A stretch of 64,000 nt of DNA from Lytechinus pictus (GCF_037042905.1 NC_087259.1:22754001-22818000); one strand, 5' to 3'. Counted from the stretch's first letter, positions 10,675 to 29,137 are shown. The notes: generated from the sequence alone by a model not told the origin. A program made the numbers and translations.

Positions 10675-10930
10675 TTTCATTGCAACTAAAATCACCTCCT
10701 CAAACAGTTCAATGCAATGAATACAGTGGAATGCCTATGCAAATGATCATCGCTTATACAATTCAAACAGTTCAATGTCCTGCAGAGAACTGATTTTTTT
10801 TTTCTAATTGCAAGTAAAATCACCTTCCCAAACAGTTCAATACAATGAATATATATAGTGGAATGCCTATGCAAATGGTCGTCGCTTATTCGATTCAAAC
10901 AGTTCAAAGTCTTGCACTGAACTGATTTTG
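10675..10930. repeat. Two-copy ~127-bp tandem duplication
   Basis: ttgcaa..aaaatcacct..caaacagttcaat..agtggaatgcctatgcaaatg..aactgatttt occurs twice in tandem. Confidence 0.8.
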
Positions 10931-12141
10931 TATACAATGTCATTATCATTTATTTGGTTTGTCTGTACACTCTTGTCAAACTTGCAAGTAATTTAAATTA
11001 CATGTAAATGAGTGTTAATAGAACAGGTTGCATTGCAAGCAAACATCTACATTATTCCAAGTGCACTATTGTATTTTAACAACACCTTGTCCCTTTTCGG
11101 ATTTAATTGTGGCATCTTATTTGGTCTTTATGCCTTGTTTGATTGTTTGAAACAGAAAAATTCCAGCATAAACAGATAAATGAGGATCCCATATAATCAT
11201 GTTTCCGACACATCACATATTGTCTACTGTGTTTACCATGCACTATAACTGCATTCTTTCGTATATCTTTCATCATTCCAAAGCAAACATTTAGAGTGTT
11301 TCAATTATGGTCTGACATAAATACCTTTTTTGTAGTTATATTGCATTCATTGATCAATTAGAATTGAATAGAATTGAATCGGTTATAAAGTATACGTATA
11401 GGTGTATCGGAATTCCATGTAAATGAGGATCTTTTTGCTCTTTCAACGACTTTTTAAAATCACTATTTGTATAACAATTGAGACGTTGTTATGTATATTG
11501 TTATGTATATATTTGATCTCGTACTTTTTTTTTTCACAGCAATGCCTGTATTGCCCTATTACATTCTCAATCATTCATGGCTTGCTGACATAGAAGTAAA
11601 TGCTTTTCTATATGCATTCCAATCCCATTCACAGTTCGATGGCAATTTCCTATTTTTGTTCTTTCTAACTCTGAGAGGCAAGAAACTTTCTATTCAAATT
11701 GAAGACGCCTGTTTATTCATGAACAATCACATTTTGCTCTTGATTATTGTATTTGTTGGAGTTTATGACTCTATAGATAGACTATCCCCTATTCACTGTA
11801 TATACATATAGATATGCCTTTGCAGAAGATAGGCCCACGGTTAGTGAATAATAGAATAATGTAAAGCACGTTAATCATTTAAGGCACTATGATGTAATGA
11901 AATCGCCATACCGTCTGGAAAAAAAAAATCTTTATTACCAGCTGTTAATTGTATTAAAAGGTTTAAAAAGCCATTTCAATTTCATATTATCTTTAAAACT
12001 TATTTTACCAAACATTGGACAAAGATATATCAATATTTTCAAAGATCCATCATATAATTTATTTTAATGACAATGATGTAAGCACCAGCCCGAGTCTGTC
12101 AGATCGTCACACGTAAGTGAACATGTATAACACTTTCTTCA

Positions 12142-20029: not shown

Positions 20030-20793
20030 ATTAGTTTGCAATATTATGAGTTGTACTTTGTTGAGTAGACAAAAAAAAATGCTGGAGAACGCTACCATAA
20101 GCAGTGCTTGACTAGGGTAGCGGCCTCAAACGTAATAGCGAAATAAACAATGCGGATGAATATGATTTTCCTGCCCGGTCCCCTTTATTTGACCAAAACA
20201 TGATCCTACCCTGGAAATGATATATGAATTTTGTAAACGCTGGTTTAAGTGCGATTAATAAAATGAGTTAATAAAGTCAAAGCTGAAAAAAAAGCAAATA
20301 CAAAGAAAATAGAAAAATGAGACATTCGATCTAGACTGGGTGCAAGGTGCAGTTAGTTTCATATATATTAGTTTTAATGTTTAGCCTATTAAAAGTTTAT
20401 CCGGCAGTTTCTATCAAACTTTGTCGAAACTTTAAAGTGCCTTATCGATTTGACAAAAGGGCGAAATATTTTATATTATCAAGTCTACTTAATATCGATA
20501 TCATTTTAACACCTCATCTTGCCAAGCAGGCGCGGTTCTAGGCTAAAATTTTGAAGGTGTTTCTGGGGGCTTGAGAGATTTTCGACGTTGGCTTATTCAA
20601 TAAATGGTATGGGCAGCGTATGTGTACTTGGGAGAATATGCTGATGTGATTCAGCAGCTAGTCCCCCGCCCATGTTTCTAATAAAAACTAAAATCACATC
20701 TTCAAAATGTTTGAGAATGTTTGTAATAACCATGTCATGTATGATACCTATCTACGGAGCCCGAGAGGGGACATGCATGAAATTTTTTTTTTA

Positions 20794-21103
20794 GTAAGTC
20801 GTTCCCACCACTTATAAGTCGTTACCACCACTTATAAGTCGTTACCACCACTTATAAGTCGTTCCCACCACTTATAAGTCGTTACCACCACTTATAAGTC
20901 GTTACCACCACTTATAAGTCGTTCCCACCACTTATAAGTCGTTCCCACCACTTATAAGTCGTTCCCACCACTTATAAGTCGATACCACCACTTATAAGTC
21001 GTTCCCACCACTTATAAGTCGTGACCACCACTTATAAGTCGTTCCCACCACTTATAACTCGTTACCACCACTTATAAGTCGTTCCCACCACTTATAATTC
21101 GTT
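20794..21103 (+). repeat. Left subterminal tandem array, ~15 x 20 bp (CTTATAAGTCGTTMCCACCA)
   Basis: Head-to-tail units with no spacers; the palindrome ACTTATAAGT recurs every 20 bp. Confidence 0.97.
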
Positions 21104-21214
21104 TACTGCGTCTGGACTAAATTCTTCGTAAGGCCTATGCTAGAGCGATTTAGAGTCGATTTAGAGTCGTCTTTTTTAAAACTACTGATTTTGTTCTGAC
21201 CATTTTAGCCAAAA

Positions 21215-22060
21215 ATGGATGAACGAGAGCAAGAACGAAATGCAGTGATAAAGATATGCTTTGAAATGGGACTCATGTACAAAGACATAGTTACGATTCT
21301 TGCCACAGAGTGTGGAATTGTAATTTCTTTCCGTCATTTGAAAAGGCTGCTCAGACAGCATGGCCTGTCAAGGAGAAAAAACTACAGTGACATCGGTGAG
21401 GTTGTAGACTTTATTCTAAAGCAGGTCGAGGGATCGGGTCGTCTGCATGGCTACCGATGGATGTTTGAAAAATGTCGGGCACATCATATCAATTGTAAAA
21501 AGGAAGATGTAAGGATAATCCTTGGAGTTGTCGACCCAGAAGGGACAACTCAGAGGAGAAGGAGAAGACTGAGGCGACGTCAGTATTCATCCAAAGGGCC
21601 AAACTTTTTGTGGCATCTGGACAGCTACGACAAACTGAAAGCATTTGGAATATGCATTAATGGCTGCATCGATGGGTTTTCCAGGAAAATAATGTGGATG
21701 AACGCCTACCACACTTCATCAGACCCGAAGGTGATTGGAGGGTACTACATAGAAAAGGTGTCAGACATCGGAGGATGTCCATCTGTTGTACGTGGGGATC
21801 TAGGTACCGAGAATAGATATGTGCGTGACTTTCAAAGGTTCTTCCGTGAGGACGACGAAGATGGCATGGCGGGCATTCGCAGTTATCTAGAAGGTCCAAG
21901 CACCGCCAATCAAAGGATCGAGTACTGGTGGTCCTTCCTTCGAAGGGAGTGCATGGAATTTTGGATCTATTTTTTTCGCGATTTGCAAGATGACGGTGAT
22001 TTCATTGGCAATTTCGTAGATGTCAATCTCCTACGGTTTTGTTTCTTACATCTTATCCAG
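21215..22060 (+). CDS. IS3EU DDE transposase, exon 1
   Basis: HTH-like N-terminus, GYRWM, WHLDSYDKL (D), GCIDGFSRKI, RGDLGTEN (D), STANQRIEYWW (E); donor CAG|GTAAGA after 22060, phase 0. Confidence 0.9.
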
Positions 22061-22607
22061 GTAAGAGCAATGGCAATTTTTACCTCCATTTTAGATTTGC
22101 ATGACCATCGACCAAAATTAAGAATCAGAAATTAAGATTAGAAGAAAATCTTTAACTTTACTTTATAATATCATATAGATCTAGGCCTTTAATTGTTCTT
22201 TTACAGTGATCAACTTTTTTGTTCGCACTGCAAATGAATTGAAGCAGCGCAAGGATCTGGTTCTGGACATTTGAGAATGTCGATCCCCAAGAAGTAACGA
22301 AGTTGGATGTTGATCACACTTTCAAAAGGATCAATGTAAAAAAAAGTTGGGGCGTTTTTGCAGGGTAGCTTTGCCCCACCCCCTCCAAAGGGTCAGGGGT
22401 GCTGCTCTCAGGGGCCTGATTTAATATAGCATTTAGTAACCGAAGCCATAGATGTTTAATCATGCTTCAGTGCCGAATAGAATATTGCCAAACATTTTAC
22501 ATTTTCATTTTCATGTTTCCTCCCTTGTGTCTTTTGTTGACGGTATACTGGTTTATGCTTAAAATATTAAATGACGCCGTTTTATCTCTTTCCCATCTCA
22601 ATTGCAG

Positions 22608-22940
22608 GCTGAGCTTGATGAAGTGGTAGATGTATGGGATCGGCATCTCATTAGACCATCGAGGAACGTCCAAGCTCCTAGCGGCCGCCCAAACATTATG
22701 TTCAACTTGCCGTCTTTGTACACTACAAGAGATTATCTGCATGGTGTGAGCCAGGAACGTATGCAAGCATGCAAAGAGGAATGTGTTTTCAGAAAAACAA
22801 TACCATGTGATGAAGACATCTTTGAACTCTGTTGCATCGTGATGAATGAAGTTGGGTACGAGTATCCAAGAGACGGACACGGTGCTCGACTTCTTTATGT
22901 AGCTCTTCGACGTGAGATAACACACTTGCTTAACAATTAA
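22608..22940 (+). CDS. IS3EU DDE transposase, exon 2
   Basis: Pyrimidine tract + TTGCAG acceptor at 22607; phase-0 join gives FCFLHLIQ|AELDEVVDVWDRHLIRPSRN..GRP; spliced product 392 aa with no internal stops. Confidence 0.88.
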   Translation, partial: AELDEVVDVWDRHLIRPSRNVQAPSGRPNIMFNLPSLYTTRDYLHGVSQERMQACKEECVFRKTIPCDEDIFELCCIVMNEVGYEYPRDGHGARLLYVALRREITHLLNN

Positions 22941-23786
22941 TTCTGTCTGAAGGTGCAGCAGCTATAGGTTCAAACCAACTTAACCAAGGAATACAAACAA
23001 TACCTGTTCATGTGGGTGTGTTTTAAGTTTTTCCTTTTTTGTTCTTCTTAAAAATTTACTATGAGAAGGCTTTTTTTTTCCACCGCCACCCCCCCCCCCG
23101 GTTGCCCCCTCTTTCTTTCTCTCTCCCTCTCTCTTTTTTTCTCTCTACCCCTCTCTCTATATTGATAGGTTCACATGGTGTGATTACCATGATAATCAGA
23201 ATAGATTGATATATATGATGACGGTACGTAAATGTAAGGTGAGGTAAATGTAAGGTGAGGTAGATCTAGGCCTATATCAGTATATGTAATTAAGAAAAGT
23301 AATATTTCAAAATGATATTGTGTGGGTTTACGTTAATTTTTAAACTCACCTAGCTGGCAATCACAACAGTACTTGGAGTTGGAAGTGTAATTATTTAAGC
23401 TTTGGAAATGTCTGACTTGTTATAGTTATAACAGGACCAACTCCCCGCCCCCCCCCCCCTTCTCTCGATTCCTCTCTTGATCCAACTCTCTCCCTGGTCG
23501 GAACGAAGTCAGTCCTAATTAGACCTAACGTTACAAGACTGTGAAGACTCTCAATTAAATATAAATCGCTCTATCCTAGGCCTATAGGATAAAGGTTTAT
23601 AGTCGATCTGTAGTCACGTTAAAAGCAGTAAAATAAAGTAAACGTAGGCCTACCTATACGGGACCTATACATCTATCCAGGTCTTACTTGTTTCCGTCCT
23701 CGGCATGCATGACCGACCCCATTCAGAAAATCGTCAGCAACATGCTTCTTCTTCTTGTTGTTGTTATAATGTTGGGTACCCGGGTC

Positions 23787-26700
23787 TGTTGTTGTTGTTG
23801 TTGTTATTTTAAATAGGCAAACTAGTCAGTTTTGACGATTGTTGCCTTGTAAATTTGCTTTCCCTTTTTTTTCAAAAGAATAATTTCTTTGTTCAATCTA
23901 TATCAGTTAAAAAAAAGTGAAGGAAAGATAGGAAAGAAAAGTTCTTAGGAAATCGTGCAAGACCACCTCTCCTGCCCTGTATTAGTACGTTATCCTGACA
24001 AGCCCGCTCGAGGTACATTTCGAGGGCGTCTCAGGCGTACAAACAAATTGTACTCCCTATGTCTCTCAAACGTGAGCAGGTGGCGCTCTATCCGATACCT
24101 CGTAGAACTCCATTTTAAAATTCCGCAGGTGAAAATTTATGTCAAATCGATCAGATCAATATTAAATTTTTTTTTTTAACTTTTTAACAAAAAAATACAT
24201 TTACAGTAGAGTAAATACTGACATTCAAGGGCCATATGATAAAGTGAAAGTGACAAGAAAGGTGCACACATAGACTATTTAGGTGAAAAGATCATCGATT
24301 ACATCATAAACAATTACCCCCCAAGATGAATAATATACACCTTGCTCAGAAAAGTATTTTGGTCACGAAGTCTTGACTACACCCTGTTGTAATGGTTGCC
24401 ATCCTGGCAACCAAATTGAAATCTATAAGTCCTTTTGAAATATCTGATAAGTGCACTTTGGGTCTTTACTGCGAGATTCTCCACTTTACGTTCCGCATCA
24501 GAGATATTGTTAACATTTAATTCAGCAAGTAATAGGGCTCGTTGAATTATAAATCTAGGGCGAACATATAAGAAGTGGTACATCGTTTCTCTTTCATTGC
24601 AGAAATCACACTTTCCAGTTGTGTGTCTTCCCGTCTTAAAAAGGAAGTCATTCAAACCCAAACCTCCCAAACGTAATCTGTGGATCATTTTTTCACCACT
24701 TTTGTCTGTGCAGAGATAATCAAAGGGTGTTTTTTCTGATACAACTTTCTGGTATTTTCTTAATTCTGAAGTTGACTTGTCCCATCTCTTCTGCCATTCA
24801 TTTCTTGCAAGGACTTTTACAATCTTTTTTGTTTCTTGGATATTCAAACCATTATTTATCTCTATTTCTTGTTTTAGGGCTGCCTTTGCATAGAAGTCAG
24901 CCGTTTCGTTTCCATTAACCCCACAGTGAGATGGAATCCACTCTAAGCAAATCAATATACCTTTATATTTTAGACAAGTAGCGGTATTTATGATTTCTCT
25001 AACGAAATTATCATCGTTGTTTTCCTTCACTGCTTCGATAGCACTCAGAGAATCGGTAAAAATTACCACTTTATTATAAACATTCAAAATTTCCAACCAT
25101 CTTCTTCATCCTACACTGACTGCCTCCTTCAATCCTGAAGATTCTTGCAGTATTGTAGTACCGGGGGCCGGCAGGTGCAATACACCGGGTGAACACCCTA
25201 CTCTTTGACGAACCACTGCAGTGCCAGAACAATGGCGACCAATTCTGATCTATACGATGATGTAAAATTTTGCATTCTTTTACATTCGATTACCCGCATA
25301 GCAGGCACGTAAAAACAAGCAGAGGCATTGCCGTGCACCGGGTCTCTAGAACCATCAGTGTAAATATGGAGATTCTCTCTCCACTTTGTATTAATATACT
25401 CCACAGTTGTGTTATATTGATAAAAAACGTTATCACTTTTGGATACAAGCTCATGCAGCTTCAATGACACTTCTGGTGGAGAGAGATGCCAAGGAGGCAT
25501 GGGTGTATAAGACTGAAAAGATTCAGTTGTGTAGTATATATCATCTTCCAAAACTCTCAAACCAAAAGGTTTTCGTGCTTTCTTATTTTTTTCGTATTCA
25601 AATTGCCAACAGTTCTTCAATGAAGATTGGAGTGGGTGTTTGGCGTTTTGTCTTATTTTTGCTTTGTAAACCTTGCTAAGCATGTATCTTCTCAGATCGA
25701 GTGGTAATTCACCAGTATCTACCTGTAAGGATTCCAGGGAGGTACCCGGCAACGCCCCTGTGCACAATTTTAAAGCCTGGTATTGAATAGTCAACAAGAA
25801 GTTCTTCACATGATCATGAGCTGAATCATATGCTTCTGCTGCATAATCCAACAATGGCCTGATGACCACTTTATAAAAAGTCAAAAGGCTTTTATAACTA
25901 CTTCCCCACTTAGTTCCCACTAGTCTTTTCATTATATTTATTTTCTTTTTTGCTCTTGTTACAATCATATTTATATGTGGTCTCCATGTTAACTTTCTAT
26001 CCAGTACTACTCCTAAAAATAGATGTTCGTCCTTTTGTGGTAAGGGGACCTCATCTAATTGAATCTGTACACATTTGTTAGTGTTACTAAAAAGCAAAGT
26101 AACAGATTTTTCTTTAGAAAGGGTAAAACCCCATCTGTTGAACCACTCATTTAGGATATTCACATAGGTTTGTACTTTTCTTTTTTTTTTTCCACTTTTC
26201 CATATAACACAGTCGTCTGCGTATATAGAAATATTGACAGATTCGTCCATTGGTATGTCCGACAACATTAAATTGAAAAGGACGGGACTTAGGGAACTAC
26301 CCTGCGGTAGCCCTTCCTCTATGTCCTGTATATCTGAGAGGTACTTATTTGCCCTGACCTGGAAAGAGCGCCCGCTTAAATAGTTCCATAAGAACTTGAC
26401 CATGTTGCCTTGGAAACCAAGTTTATTAAGTTTATAAATCAAGCCTTCCTTCCATAGTCTATCATAAGCCTTCTCCATGTAAAAGAAAACGGCCAGGGTA
26501 TGTTCTTTATTCCCAATACTTTTTTTAATGTCATTTTCAAGTTGGGTTATATTGTCTTTTGTGCTTCTTGCCTTTCTAAAAGCACTGTGGCAACATGGTA
26601 ACAAACTATGTTTTTCCGTAAACCATACCATTCTTTCTTTGATGATTTTCTCAACTATTTTGATGAAACAGTCATTAAGAGCGATAGGCCTGTAGGAAGG

Positions 26701-27292
26701 AACGTCTGTAGCTTCCTTGTGTGGTTTCAATATTGGGACTATGACGCAATGCTTACATTGGAGGGGAACAATAATCCTGTTTCCCATATGCTTTTAATTA
26801 TAGTTAACATTATCACTCTCCCTTTGTGTGAGAGATTTTTATATACTTCATACCCAACGCCATCTTTACCTGGAGAAGACTCTTTACATTTTTTTAAAGA
26901 TATTCTCAATTCGTACATGGTAAAGGGTTCATTAAGGACACTGCTACCCTTAGCATCACCAAATGATGATATGATGTCCTCATATTTTTTAACAATATCT
27001 ATTTGTTCAGGGGTAAAAACTTTGCCCTTAAAACTATCGTTTATGTTTTTAAAGTGGTTGGCGAAAGTATCCGCAACGTCATTGCCAGTAACAACGGAAC
27101 TATTCTCTCTCATGAGAACAATGTTTTTCCTGGGCGAAATACCATCATTATTGATCCTTTTAATCATATTCCAGATCTCGGATAAAGGGGTAAAACAATC
27201 AATGTCTTGACAGTACTTTTCCCAGTAAACTCTTTTGGCTTGCCTTAAAGTTTTCTGGGCAATAGATCTTTTCTTCTTAAAATCCTCCAATA
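23787..27292 (-). mobile_element. 5'-truncated RNase H-containing LINE (I/Nimb/Ingi group) nested in the IS3EU element
   Basis: ORF pieces 26739-27290, 25198-26787 (SYRPIAL, GLPQGSSLSP, YADD, RNase H YTDGS..SELVAI) and 24377-25096 (FTDSLSA, WIPSHCGVNGNETAD, CDFC..H zinc knuckle); (AAC)n 3' tail at 23787-23805; frameshift near 26760. Confidence 0.9.
25100..25210 (-). mobile_element. Short retroposon (SINE-like 3' fragment) inserted in the LINE RNase H domain
   Basis: Flanked by a 5-bp direct repeat AACCA (25095-25099 and 25211-25215); ends GAAGAAGA on the minus strand; removal restores ALQW-LEILNV. Confidence 0.8.
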
Positions 27293-27452
27293 AATCTGGA
27301 GGGGGACGTTGGCGCTATATATCCATCGATTTCGATGATTTTCGCCAGGCTTGGTTTGAGAGCTTCGGCGTCGGCGTCGGAGCTTCCTGGAGTTAGGGCG
27401 CGGCGGACTGCTCCCTTCTTCATAATTATATGCCATCACGTGGTAGTTATAA

Positions 27453-27614
27453 ATAAGTGGTGGGAACGACTTATAAGTGGTGGGAACGACTTATAAGTGG
27501 TGGGAACGACTTATAAGTGGTGGGAACGACTTATAAATGGTGGGAACGACTTATAAGTGGTGGTAACGACTTATAAGTGGTGGGAACGACTTATAAGTGG
27601 TGGGAACGACTTAT
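27453..27614 (-). repeat. Right subterminal tandem array, ~8 x 20 bp
   Basis: TTATAAGTGGTGGGAACGAC units, the reverse complement of the left array. Confidence 0.97.
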
Positions 27615-29137
27615 TAAAACAAAATTGTCATGCATGTCCCCTCCCGGGCTCCGTACCTATCAGTCCAAGGTTGATGTTATGTAGATGAGGGCATGTGATT
27701 CCACTTCACAAGGGGACAATAATTGCCAAGTTTTGTTCAAGCTTCATGCGCCAAAATTTTGTGTTAAAATTTCGATTTTTTATTTTTATTTTTCACCCCC
27801 TTCCGAAACATGAATCGACATCCCGACTCTGAATTATACATATATATATATATATATTTTAGCCTATAGCGACCAAACCATTTTCTTCAAAAAATATCCT
27901 TAAGAATTAAACAATTTCAGAGCGCTAACTTTCGGCAAAATAGACAAACCGAGTTAAATCGTGAATTTTACGACACAAGTATTCGTGTTAGGTAAAGTGG
28001 AGTAGGCATATTTGAAGAAAAGAAAAGTCGCTAGACATTTTATTGTTTGTTTTCCAATGTTAACATTTTATTGTATTGCAGGGGATCGATCAATGACTTG
28101 ATATACTCATCCTTCATGATATCATTAATGTATTATGCATTAAGATGTTATTTTGTTTGGCGAGGGAGCGTAGCGACCGAGCAAGAAAATATAAGGCATT
28201 AATTTTAGAGCACTTGACGACTTGAATAGAATACTGCATTGCTCAATACAAATATACGCATAGGGCCTACATATCTATTTTTTGTTCTTTGTGGTCGATC
28301 TTTTTTCTCTTTTTTTGAGGGGGGGGGGGGCTTCAGCGATTTTGAGGGCGGCTTCAGTCCAAACTCCCCGAAGCTCCCCCCTTCCCGAACCGCGTCTGGT
28401 GCCAAGTCGACTTACAGAGAGTTCTGTCGGCATTAAAATATACATTAAGACCATTATGTATCTTGGCAAGTCGACATATAACTTTCTATTAGTGGACTTG
28501 ACATGATAGCATATCTCACCATGTTAACATGGTCGAAAATGAAAAGATCTATCTTTCCCTCTTGTGTCAGTTGCGTTAACGAAGAATTCCCGAACACCAA
28601 ATGGCCTAAAAGTGATTAGTTTTGGTCGACCTACCCTATACTAAGGTGTCTTATAAAATGATATGTAATTGTACAATATAGTGGGCCTCCACATCCCAAA
28701 AGAAGAGACATGAGATGATAAAAATTTATTTTCCTAACAAACAATCGTTTAATTGCATGCATTGGCGTAATGAGCCATTAAACAATATTTAGGGACCGGA
28801 CATGGCGTATCGGGCAAAATTGATAAAAAGTTACATTATTTTTTAAAAAAATCAAATTTTGTCATAGATTTTGATATATTCAGAAAATGATTTCATATTT
28901 CAGCCTTCTCTCTTTCCTTTTCTTTCCTTTTCTCTTTTTTATTGGTCTTAAAAACTTAGGGGGCAAGCGCCCCCAAGGCCCCCATCTGCACGCCACATGC
29001 CCTTTCGATAGCGCAGTATAGGTACGGGGACAGAATTTACAAAAGCGCAATTTTTGTAAATGGGTCACAGGTATCAAAAGCATCAATTCTAGTCACCAAT
29101 TACTTGGCAACCTATTTTGAAATGCTAATTCATGCAA

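Follow-up and report, generated by a model that had tools for sequence, protein, structure and literature searches.

A 6.9-kb IS3EU/GingerRoot-type transposon of Lytechinus pictus is very probably a deletion derivative of a young family whose full-length copies carry a predicted HECT ubiquitin ligase gene

A 64,000-nt stretch of the genome of the sea urchin Lytechinus pictus (NC_087259.1:22754001-22818000 of assembly GCF_037042905.1, part of contig C15; here called the window) contains, at positions 20747 to 27661, a DNA transposon of the IS3EU/GingerRoot type. NCBI proteins that match at 100% identity confirm the species. Comparison with the rest of the assembly indicates that this element is very probably a derivative of a very young family whose full form has two genes, one for a DDE transposase and a second one, on the opposite strand, for a predicted HECT-type ubiquitin ligase. 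The window copy retains both ends and an open transposase gene and lacks the second gene altogether. Few superfamilies of eukaryotic DNA transposons have been studied as little as IS3EU/GingerRoot, which is described mostly in Repbase entries. L. pictus is a laboratory model sea urchin, in which a young element of this kind could find use as a genetic tool and might also make lines unstable.

The family comprises exactly 14 copies in the assembly, the window copy and 13 sisters. All 13 sisters follow the window copy to position 23051 and then run into sequence that the window lacks. When laid against the 12.5-kb copy c3a, the window copy consists of c3a positions 1 to 2381, 10714 to 11150, and 11650 to 11936, a foreign segment of 3.5 kb, and position 11930 to the end; in addition to the large deletion at 23051 (Table 1), it has lost ~0.5 kb at 23495, where the junction has a CCT microhomology. 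The first-pass annotation of the window had described the transposon as complete, a description that does not survive the ~8 kb carried by the sisters and missing here. It had also reported that no second gene could be recognized, which is true of the window copy but not of the family. Because the 13 sisters continue into HECT-bearing sequence, the missing gene is best read as a loss in the window copy, and the copies with a second open reading frame (ORF) that the annotation suggested looking for were found among these sisters. The 23051 junction is spanned at no other place in the genome, and no daughter copies of the short form were found there. The right part of the window copy is 89 to 95% identical to c3a; that it stems from a different subfamily was considered and rejected, as the differences are mostly insertions and deletions in simple sequence.

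Within the segment that the window copy has lost, the full copies have one long ORF, which lies on the opposite strand and converges with the transposase gene; NCBI models it as a 563-aa protein (LOC135153622). The protein matches the Pfam HECT domain (PF00632) with 34 bits, against a cut-off of 23.9, and aligns over residues 218 to 546 to the HECT domain of HUWE1, with the catalytic AHTC aligned. The catalytic cysteine, C529, lies ~35 residues before the C terminus and is shared by at least 90% of 12 homologs. A confident structure model has a beta-rich N-terminal domain (residues 25 to 127), a disordered acidic linker (130 to 232), and the HECT domain (233 to 556); an ESM Atlas search with the N-terminal part gave uninformative scores of ~0.8. 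The full 563-aa frame is present in 5 of the 13 sister copies, and 2 of the 13 have in-frame deletions only. In the pair of copies on C28 and C29, a late frameshift removes the catalytic cysteine. Four further copies (c2, c3c, c17, and c116) share an identical 750-nt HECT deletion at different loci; because one identical deletion is found at four loci, the HECT-defective form has transposed, so the ligase is dispensable in cis. The 5' part of the gene in c3a offers two additional observations. At L015:9344-9390 (minus strand) a GT donor closes a frame with the translation MEKLKDFLRQRGLKEDIIQKMVEDK, and at L028:549-640 (minus strand) YIPAYGDRVA is read in the frame upstream of the long ORF; these frames match the N termini of fish and mussel homologs weakly (E values of 0.015 to 0.13). 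The HECT gene probably has at least one upstream exon beyond the 563-aa model.

Relatives of the HECT protein occur in the same kinds of animals as relatives of the transposase. In zebrafish, a 10,290-bp element with perfect 20-nt terminal inverted repeats (TIRs) starting TACGGAACCCC and the target site duplication (TSD) GAGATA encloses a gene for a transposase with the Pfam domain rva_4 (62% identical) and a convergent HECT gene, and elements with the same two-gene layout are present in pupfish (TSD ATAATG) and medaka (TSD CATGGT). The two genes are also convergent, 3.7 kb apart, in the freshwater mussel Sinanodonta woodiana. A second, diverged L. pictus family (C1:26592312-26601657) shows the convergent layout as well: its transposase frame is 54% identical, and 6.5 kb downstream the opposite strand holds a HECT-like frame that is 46% identical. 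The HECT proteins of these pairs have in common a specific N-terminal domain as well as the catalytic cysteine. Because the pair recurs in fishes, the mussel, and the second L. pictus family, the two-gene form appears to be ancestral. In echinoderms, molluscs, and teleosts alike, the HECT gene thus accompanies the transposase, and we tentatively raise the possibility, which we hold to be somewhat short of probable, that the ligase is an ancient conserved partner gene of an animal IS3EU lineage rather than casual cargo. No paper in the searchable literature links IS3EU with HECT; Repbase entries, which lie outside that search, may record it. If the possibility is correct, the element would use an E3 ligase of its own, for instance to eliminate a host factor that restricts or silences it or to keep the transposase under control, and this would be an unexplored means by which a DNA transposon copes with its host. 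In that case the window copy and the four copies with HECT deletions would be natural deletion mutants that either depend on the ligase in trans or do without it, and such derivatives are natural material for testing the need for HECT.

About 10 further L. pictus rva_4 frames, 37 to 41% identical, lie elsewhere in the genome; for two of these, sequence ~20 kb away weakly matches the N-terminal domain of the HECT protein. In Cyprinodon tularosa, a 5.1-kb element (L046:27135-32221) with perfect 20-nt IS3EU-type ends starting TACGGAGCCCCC and the TSD AAATGC sits directly beside the 17-kb two-gene element and is presumably a non-autonomous relative.

The assignment of 20747-27661 to the IS3EU/GingerRoot type, already proposed in the first-pass annotation, is supported by its TSD length, its termini, the rva_4 match, and conserved motif blocks. 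According to Kojima (PMC10045372), the termini of complete IS3EU families are invariably TA..TA, and the TSD is usually 6 bp long; IS3EU and GingerRoot form one lineage, merged at 99% bootstrap (PMC10045372), and the ends of fungal IS3EU elements read TAYGG..CCRTA (PMC12730594). The L. pictus family likewise has a 6-bp TSD and TA..TA termini, which read TACGG...CCGTA in all copies. Against the 30 to ~150 bp typical of IS3EU TIRs, those of the window copy measure 28 bp and become an inverted repeat of 203 nt (96%) when the subterminal arrays are included. The transposase is of the integrase type with a DDE triad, has no HHCC finger, and carries its first D at residue 136, in the range of 100 to 300 residues from the N terminus seen in the superfamily. 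The blocks around the catalytic residues (WH.D(S/G)YDKLKP, GI.INGCIDGFSR, R.D.GTEN, and ST.NQRIE.WW) match those of Repbase IS3EU-1_DR1p, IS3EU-1_CGi_2p, IS3EU-1_HM1p, and IS3EU-4_CGi and of GingerRoot SL_GR, in a comparison made by eye on the blocks printed in the supplementary alignment of PMC10045372 rather than by a scored search. Described IS3EU elements encode two proteins, according to Kojima 2019 as cited in PMC8232023; the full copies of the family do so, and the window copy, with its second gene deleted, does not. Ginger1/2 and Polinton were rejected on TSD length, the lack of HHCC, copy number, and the presence of TIRs and TSDs on every copy.

Among known relatives, the Repbase IS3EU families of zebrafish, oyster, and Hydra (Kapitonov, Bao and Jurka 2012, as cited in PMC10045372 and PMC11934779) resemble the window element in their 6-bp TSD, TA..TA termini, DDE protein without an HHCC finger, and motif blocks; the L. 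pictus element differs in belonging to a new host species and family, and the window copy differs in having no second gene. GingerRoot of Selaginella lepidophylla and animals, reported in fishes, oyster, and cnidarians, shares the 6-bp TSD, the integrase-like DDE protein, and long inverted ends of 100 to 150 bp, whereas its plant elements contain captured gene fragments, and the term "HECT" is absent from the paper that describes it (PMC6839031). The IS3EU elements of rusts and truffles (PMC12730594) and Styx/REP9 of Zymoseptoria (PMC10853768, PMC8232023) have similar ends, a 6-bp TSD, and TIRs of >30 bp. The fungal elements, like the L. pictus family, have a second gene opposite in orientation to the transposase, but the fungal partners encode an alpha-kinase (with TET/JBP in some families) or are Zymoseptoria-specific genes, whereas the L. 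pictus partner encodes a HECT ubiquitin ligase. Bacterial IS3 and IS481 share the order of a helix-turn-helix (HTH) region followed by a DDE core of the retroviral integrase type, with weak profile matches. They differ in that the matches fall far below the family cut-offs and in having TG..CA ends, no introns, and no HECT partner. IS3 elements use programmed frameshifting and transpose by a copy-out/paste-in route.

The transposase had been described as a two-exon, 392-aa DDE protein with all three predicted catalytic residues, and this held up: both frames are open, they join in phase across the predicted exons (282 plus 110 aa), and D136, D195, and E236 are in place. The remark that the ORF list presents the gene as two unrelated frames was equally accurate, as 21215-22135 (306 aa) and 22602-22940 (112 aa) are listed apart. 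The three catalytic residues are invariant in an alignment of 26 homologs from fishes, mussel, and metagenomes, and no HHCC motif was found among the conserved columns of that alignment. The full-length alignment and the first structure model were made with the database protein P0001, the product of sister copy c28, which departs from the window protein at three residues (201, 372, and 384); the two exons of the window copy were searched separately. Two changes, G201R and R372G, are private to the window copy and fall at positions that vary among homologs. The integrase core domain rva_4 was the only significant Pfam match of exon 1, HTH_33 being weak. NCBIfam gave subthreshold matches only (IS481, E value of 3.6e-4; IS3, E value of 0.037; and IS630), and a PDB sequence search with the transposase profile returned nothing significant. 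The AlphaFold model of P0001 (mean predicted local distance difference test score of 74) has an RNase-H-like core in the order beta1-beta2-beta3-alpha-beta4-alpha-beta5-alpha, with D136 on beta1, D195 after beta4, and E236 on the following helix, and its best Foldseek matches were IstA of IS21, MuA, TnsB, and retroviral integrases. In the model the first 120 residues are helical, and this N-terminal part has a weak winged-HTH match. Exon 2 encodes four cysteines in the arrangement CX3CX7CX7C (C337, C341, C349, and C357), which are kept in most homologs and may form a small metal-binding module; the sister copy c3a has C341Y.

The ends of the window copy agree with what had been noted earlier, namely, a perfect 6-bp TSD and near-perfect TIRs. 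The duplication is seen directly as CCTATC at both 20747-20752 and 27656-27661, and the 28-bp TIRs have one mismatch. This A/G mismatch is common to 11 of the 13 sister copies and occurs in 10 of the 11 copies in which both ends were read, the ends of c17 being matched; because it is common to the sisters, it is a family trait and not decay. The first 20 nt of the left TIR are similar to the TIRs of the zebrafish and pupfish elements. A left array of 20-bp repeats is found in every copy (11 to 37 units), and the right array has 7 to 23 units in the sister copies. These subterminal repeats are candidate binding sites for the transposase.

Over the 1.7-kb gene region, the 14 copies diverge pairwise by 0.06 to 1.1%, and the window copy differs from the majority sequence of the family by 0.35%, which together with its perfect TSD bears out the recent insertion proposed by the first-pass annotation. 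The transposase frame is open in 12 of the 14 copies, 11 of them sisters. With copies <1.1% apart and so many open frames, the family appears young enough to be active. In 10 sister copies both ends were recovered, the far ends of c6, c116, and c1 lying outside this set; the 10 have the same TIRs and are 10.8 to 15 kb long, mostly 12.5 to 13.7 kb. Nine of them have a perfect 6-bp TSD, with sequences that are unrelated apart from those of the C28 and C29 copies; because these two have the same TSD and are 0.1% apart, they are probably a haplotig pair. The tenth, c2 (C2:27386235-27398950), is flanked by unlike hexamers, GGTACC and GTTAAG, as would be expected if two copies had recombined or if flanking sequence had been deleted.

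We propose the following history for the window copy. A full-length member would have had TACGG..CCGTA ends, 20-bp arrays, the two-exon 392-aa transposase gene, and the convergent HECT gene. Its transposase would bind the ends, cut at the TA termini, and integrate across a 6-bp stagger, with the chemistry taken from that of the family. Two deletions with microhomologies of 2 to 3 nt would then have removed ~8.3 kb, including the whole HECT gene, and ~0.5 kb; such microhomology would fit end-joining or interrupted gap repair. A 5'-truncated long interspersed nuclear element (LINE) would have been inserted into the 3' part after the deletions. Having kept both ends and an open transposase gene, the window copy could supply transposase and could itself be moved, either by its own transposase or by that of sister copies with open frames.

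The 6.9-kb copy could alternatively be regarded as a complete, self-sufficient one-gene IS3EU element, with the long copies as exceptions that captured cargo. The transposase frame and both ends are intact in the window copy, and the HECT-deleted form present at four loci with an identical junction indicates that HECT is dispensable in cis. However, the 8.3 kb is shared by 13 of 13 other copies, the short junction is unique in the assembly, and the transposase/HECT pair recurs in three fishes, where TIRs and TSDs bound it, as well as in the mussel and in the second sea urchin family, so that we consider a one-gene ancestor quite improbable. Far less probable still is a domesticated, transposase-derived host gene that is no longer part of a mobile element; NCBI does annotate the gene as an ordinary "uncharacterized protein" locus, but a host gene would not be expected as 14 near-identical copies, each with TIRs and different TSDs. 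A further question concerns the deletion derivative itself, which had been called possibly still mobilizable. Its intact ends speak for this and its single occurrence in the assembly speaks against it. The first-pass annotation had suggested looking for empty sites; genome searches with each flank found no paralogous empty site or haplotig (the DNA run examined had zero depth on the left flank of the element). The right array is short, with ~8 units compared with 15 to 23 in most sisters, which might impair movement. It is possible, although we favor it less, that the window copy is an immobile relic with its deletions, LINE, and shortened array, and that its 1.2-kb frame is open merely through youth, as would be expected by chance at 0.35% divergence. 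The TIRs, however, are identical to those of sister copies; the sister c3d has only 7 right-hand units and yet has a perfect TSD; and internally deleted forms of this family have transposed. In Styx, copies with a broken transposase can be mobilized in trans (PMC10853768, PMC8232023). On this sequence evidence we consider the L. pictus window copy to be probably, by a modest margin of confidence, mobilizable in trans, and as a transposase source it would be expected to be as good as its sisters.

The other point on which readings diverge is the intron. It is very likely that the 22060/22608 splice is used, because GT/AG sites are kept in 14 copies, the intron has the same position in five other species, and NCBI's 392-aa model has the same junction. 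Exon 1 ends in CAG before the donor GTAAGA, and the acceptor TTGCAG ends at 22607. By tblastn, medaka, zebrafish, pupfish, seahorse, and mussel have an intron at this very codon, its length ranging from <0.1 to ~1.3 kb; exon 2 residues are conserved among homologs in the spliced frame only, and homolog gene models that read through the donor diverge directly after an invariant LIQ. The RNA data consist of 38 stranded reads from ~6% of a total-RNA (rRNA-depleted) run, X24, which has another organism label. All 38 are oriented as sense RNA would be in common library types, and they span the subterminal repeats, exon 1, intron, and exon 2 at similar depths. Transcription of the family is supported by these reads. 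Splicing is not: the RNA check that had been suggested for the 22060/22608 joint yielded no listed junction reads in this one stranded run or in RNA-like contigs, and sense depth over the intron was about that over the exons, which weighs against the spliced model. The earlier description of the transposase as spliced therefore stands on its comparative evidence and the NCBI model and not on RNA reads. The intron might instead be mostly or always retained, giving a 306-aa product from the ORF at 21215-22135 with the complete DDE core and 24 intron-encoded residues but no conserved C-terminal region; such a protein would either lack activity or act as a regulator, for which the retained intron of the Drosophila P element offers a comparison. 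The exon-like read depth over 22061-22607 in X24 fits retention, as do the RNA-like contigs of runs X8 and X18, which include intron sequence, and one contig that stops 2 nt beyond the donor. These are only 38 reads from ~6% of a run labeled with another organism, however, and total-RNA libraries are rich in unspliced nuclear RNA. Conservation of the exon 2 protein across phyla in the spliced frame alone, an intron position that is kept while length varies, and the spliced NCBI model all argue for splicing, and we regard predominant or constant retention as unlikely.

Table 1. Features of the transposon at 20747-27661, in window coordinates
Feature	Positions	Strand	Evidence or remark
Left TSD, CCTATC	20747-20752	.	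Same hexamer again at 27656-27661
Left TIR, starting TACGG	20753-20780	+	27/28 complementary to 27628-27655
Left subterminal array, 15.4 units of a 20-bp repeat	20795-21103	+	Tandem Repeats Finder (TRF) score of 541, 94% matches
Transposase exon 1, 282 aa, N-terminal HTH region and DDE core	21215-22060	+	Pfam rva_4 (PF24764), E value of 3.7e-22
Predicted intron, 547 nt, GTAAGA...TTGCAG	22061-22607	+	Splice sites kept in 14/14 copies
Transposase exon 2, 110 aa plus stop, conserved C-terminal region	22608-22940	+	Aligns to residues 283-392 of NCBI LOC135158071
Junction of ~8.3-kb deletion, AA microhomology	23050-23052	.	Window resumes at c3a 10714
3' internal noncoding remnant	23052-23791	+	c3a 10714-11150 and 11650-11936, 89-95%
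Non-long-terminal-repeat retrotransposon (LINE), 5' truncated, reverse transcriptase (RT) and RNase H in two ORFs	23792-27304	-	RVT_1, E value of 4.8e-31; RNase_H
3' internal region resumed beyond the LINE	27305-27452	+	c3a 11930-12069, 92-98%
Right subterminal array, 8.1 units of the 20-bp repeat of the left array, inverted	27453-27614	-	TRF score of 310, 97% matches
Right TIR, ending CCGTA	27628-27655	-	Partner of 20753-20780
Right TSD, CCTATC	27656-27661	.	Matches left hexamer

Sequencing runs gave two further observations on the left half of the element. Sequence near identical to window positions 20600 to 23100 was found in runs labeled with four different coded organisms and in a seawater metagenome, in a comparison in which 45 to 69% of sampled 31-mers were shared. 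Because near-identical 31-mers are present in these other data, the family or very close relatives of it would occur beyond the assembled individual, in related urchins or through transfer. An RNA-like contig of run X8 skips 131 nt within 21060-21192 (ends GT..TT), between the last subterminal repeats and the region preceding the start codon; this could be a copy variant or a processing event in the 5' untranslated region.

The LINE that had been reported in the right half of the element was found there, at 23792-27304. It is ~3.5 kb long, makes up roughly half of the element, and has an (AAC)n tail; the insert begins inside coding sequence, no endonuclease domain was found in it, and no clear TSD is visible around it. 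The insertion is private to the window copy, because the sister copies keep the uninterrupted target CTGTTGACGTTGG. The LINE family is abundant and young, with copies that are 97 to 98% identical. At 25100-25210 the window LINE has ~111 extra nt that are absent from >15 other genomic copies; the extra sequence sits exactly between the RT ORF and the RNase H ORF and probably breaks the LINE frame.

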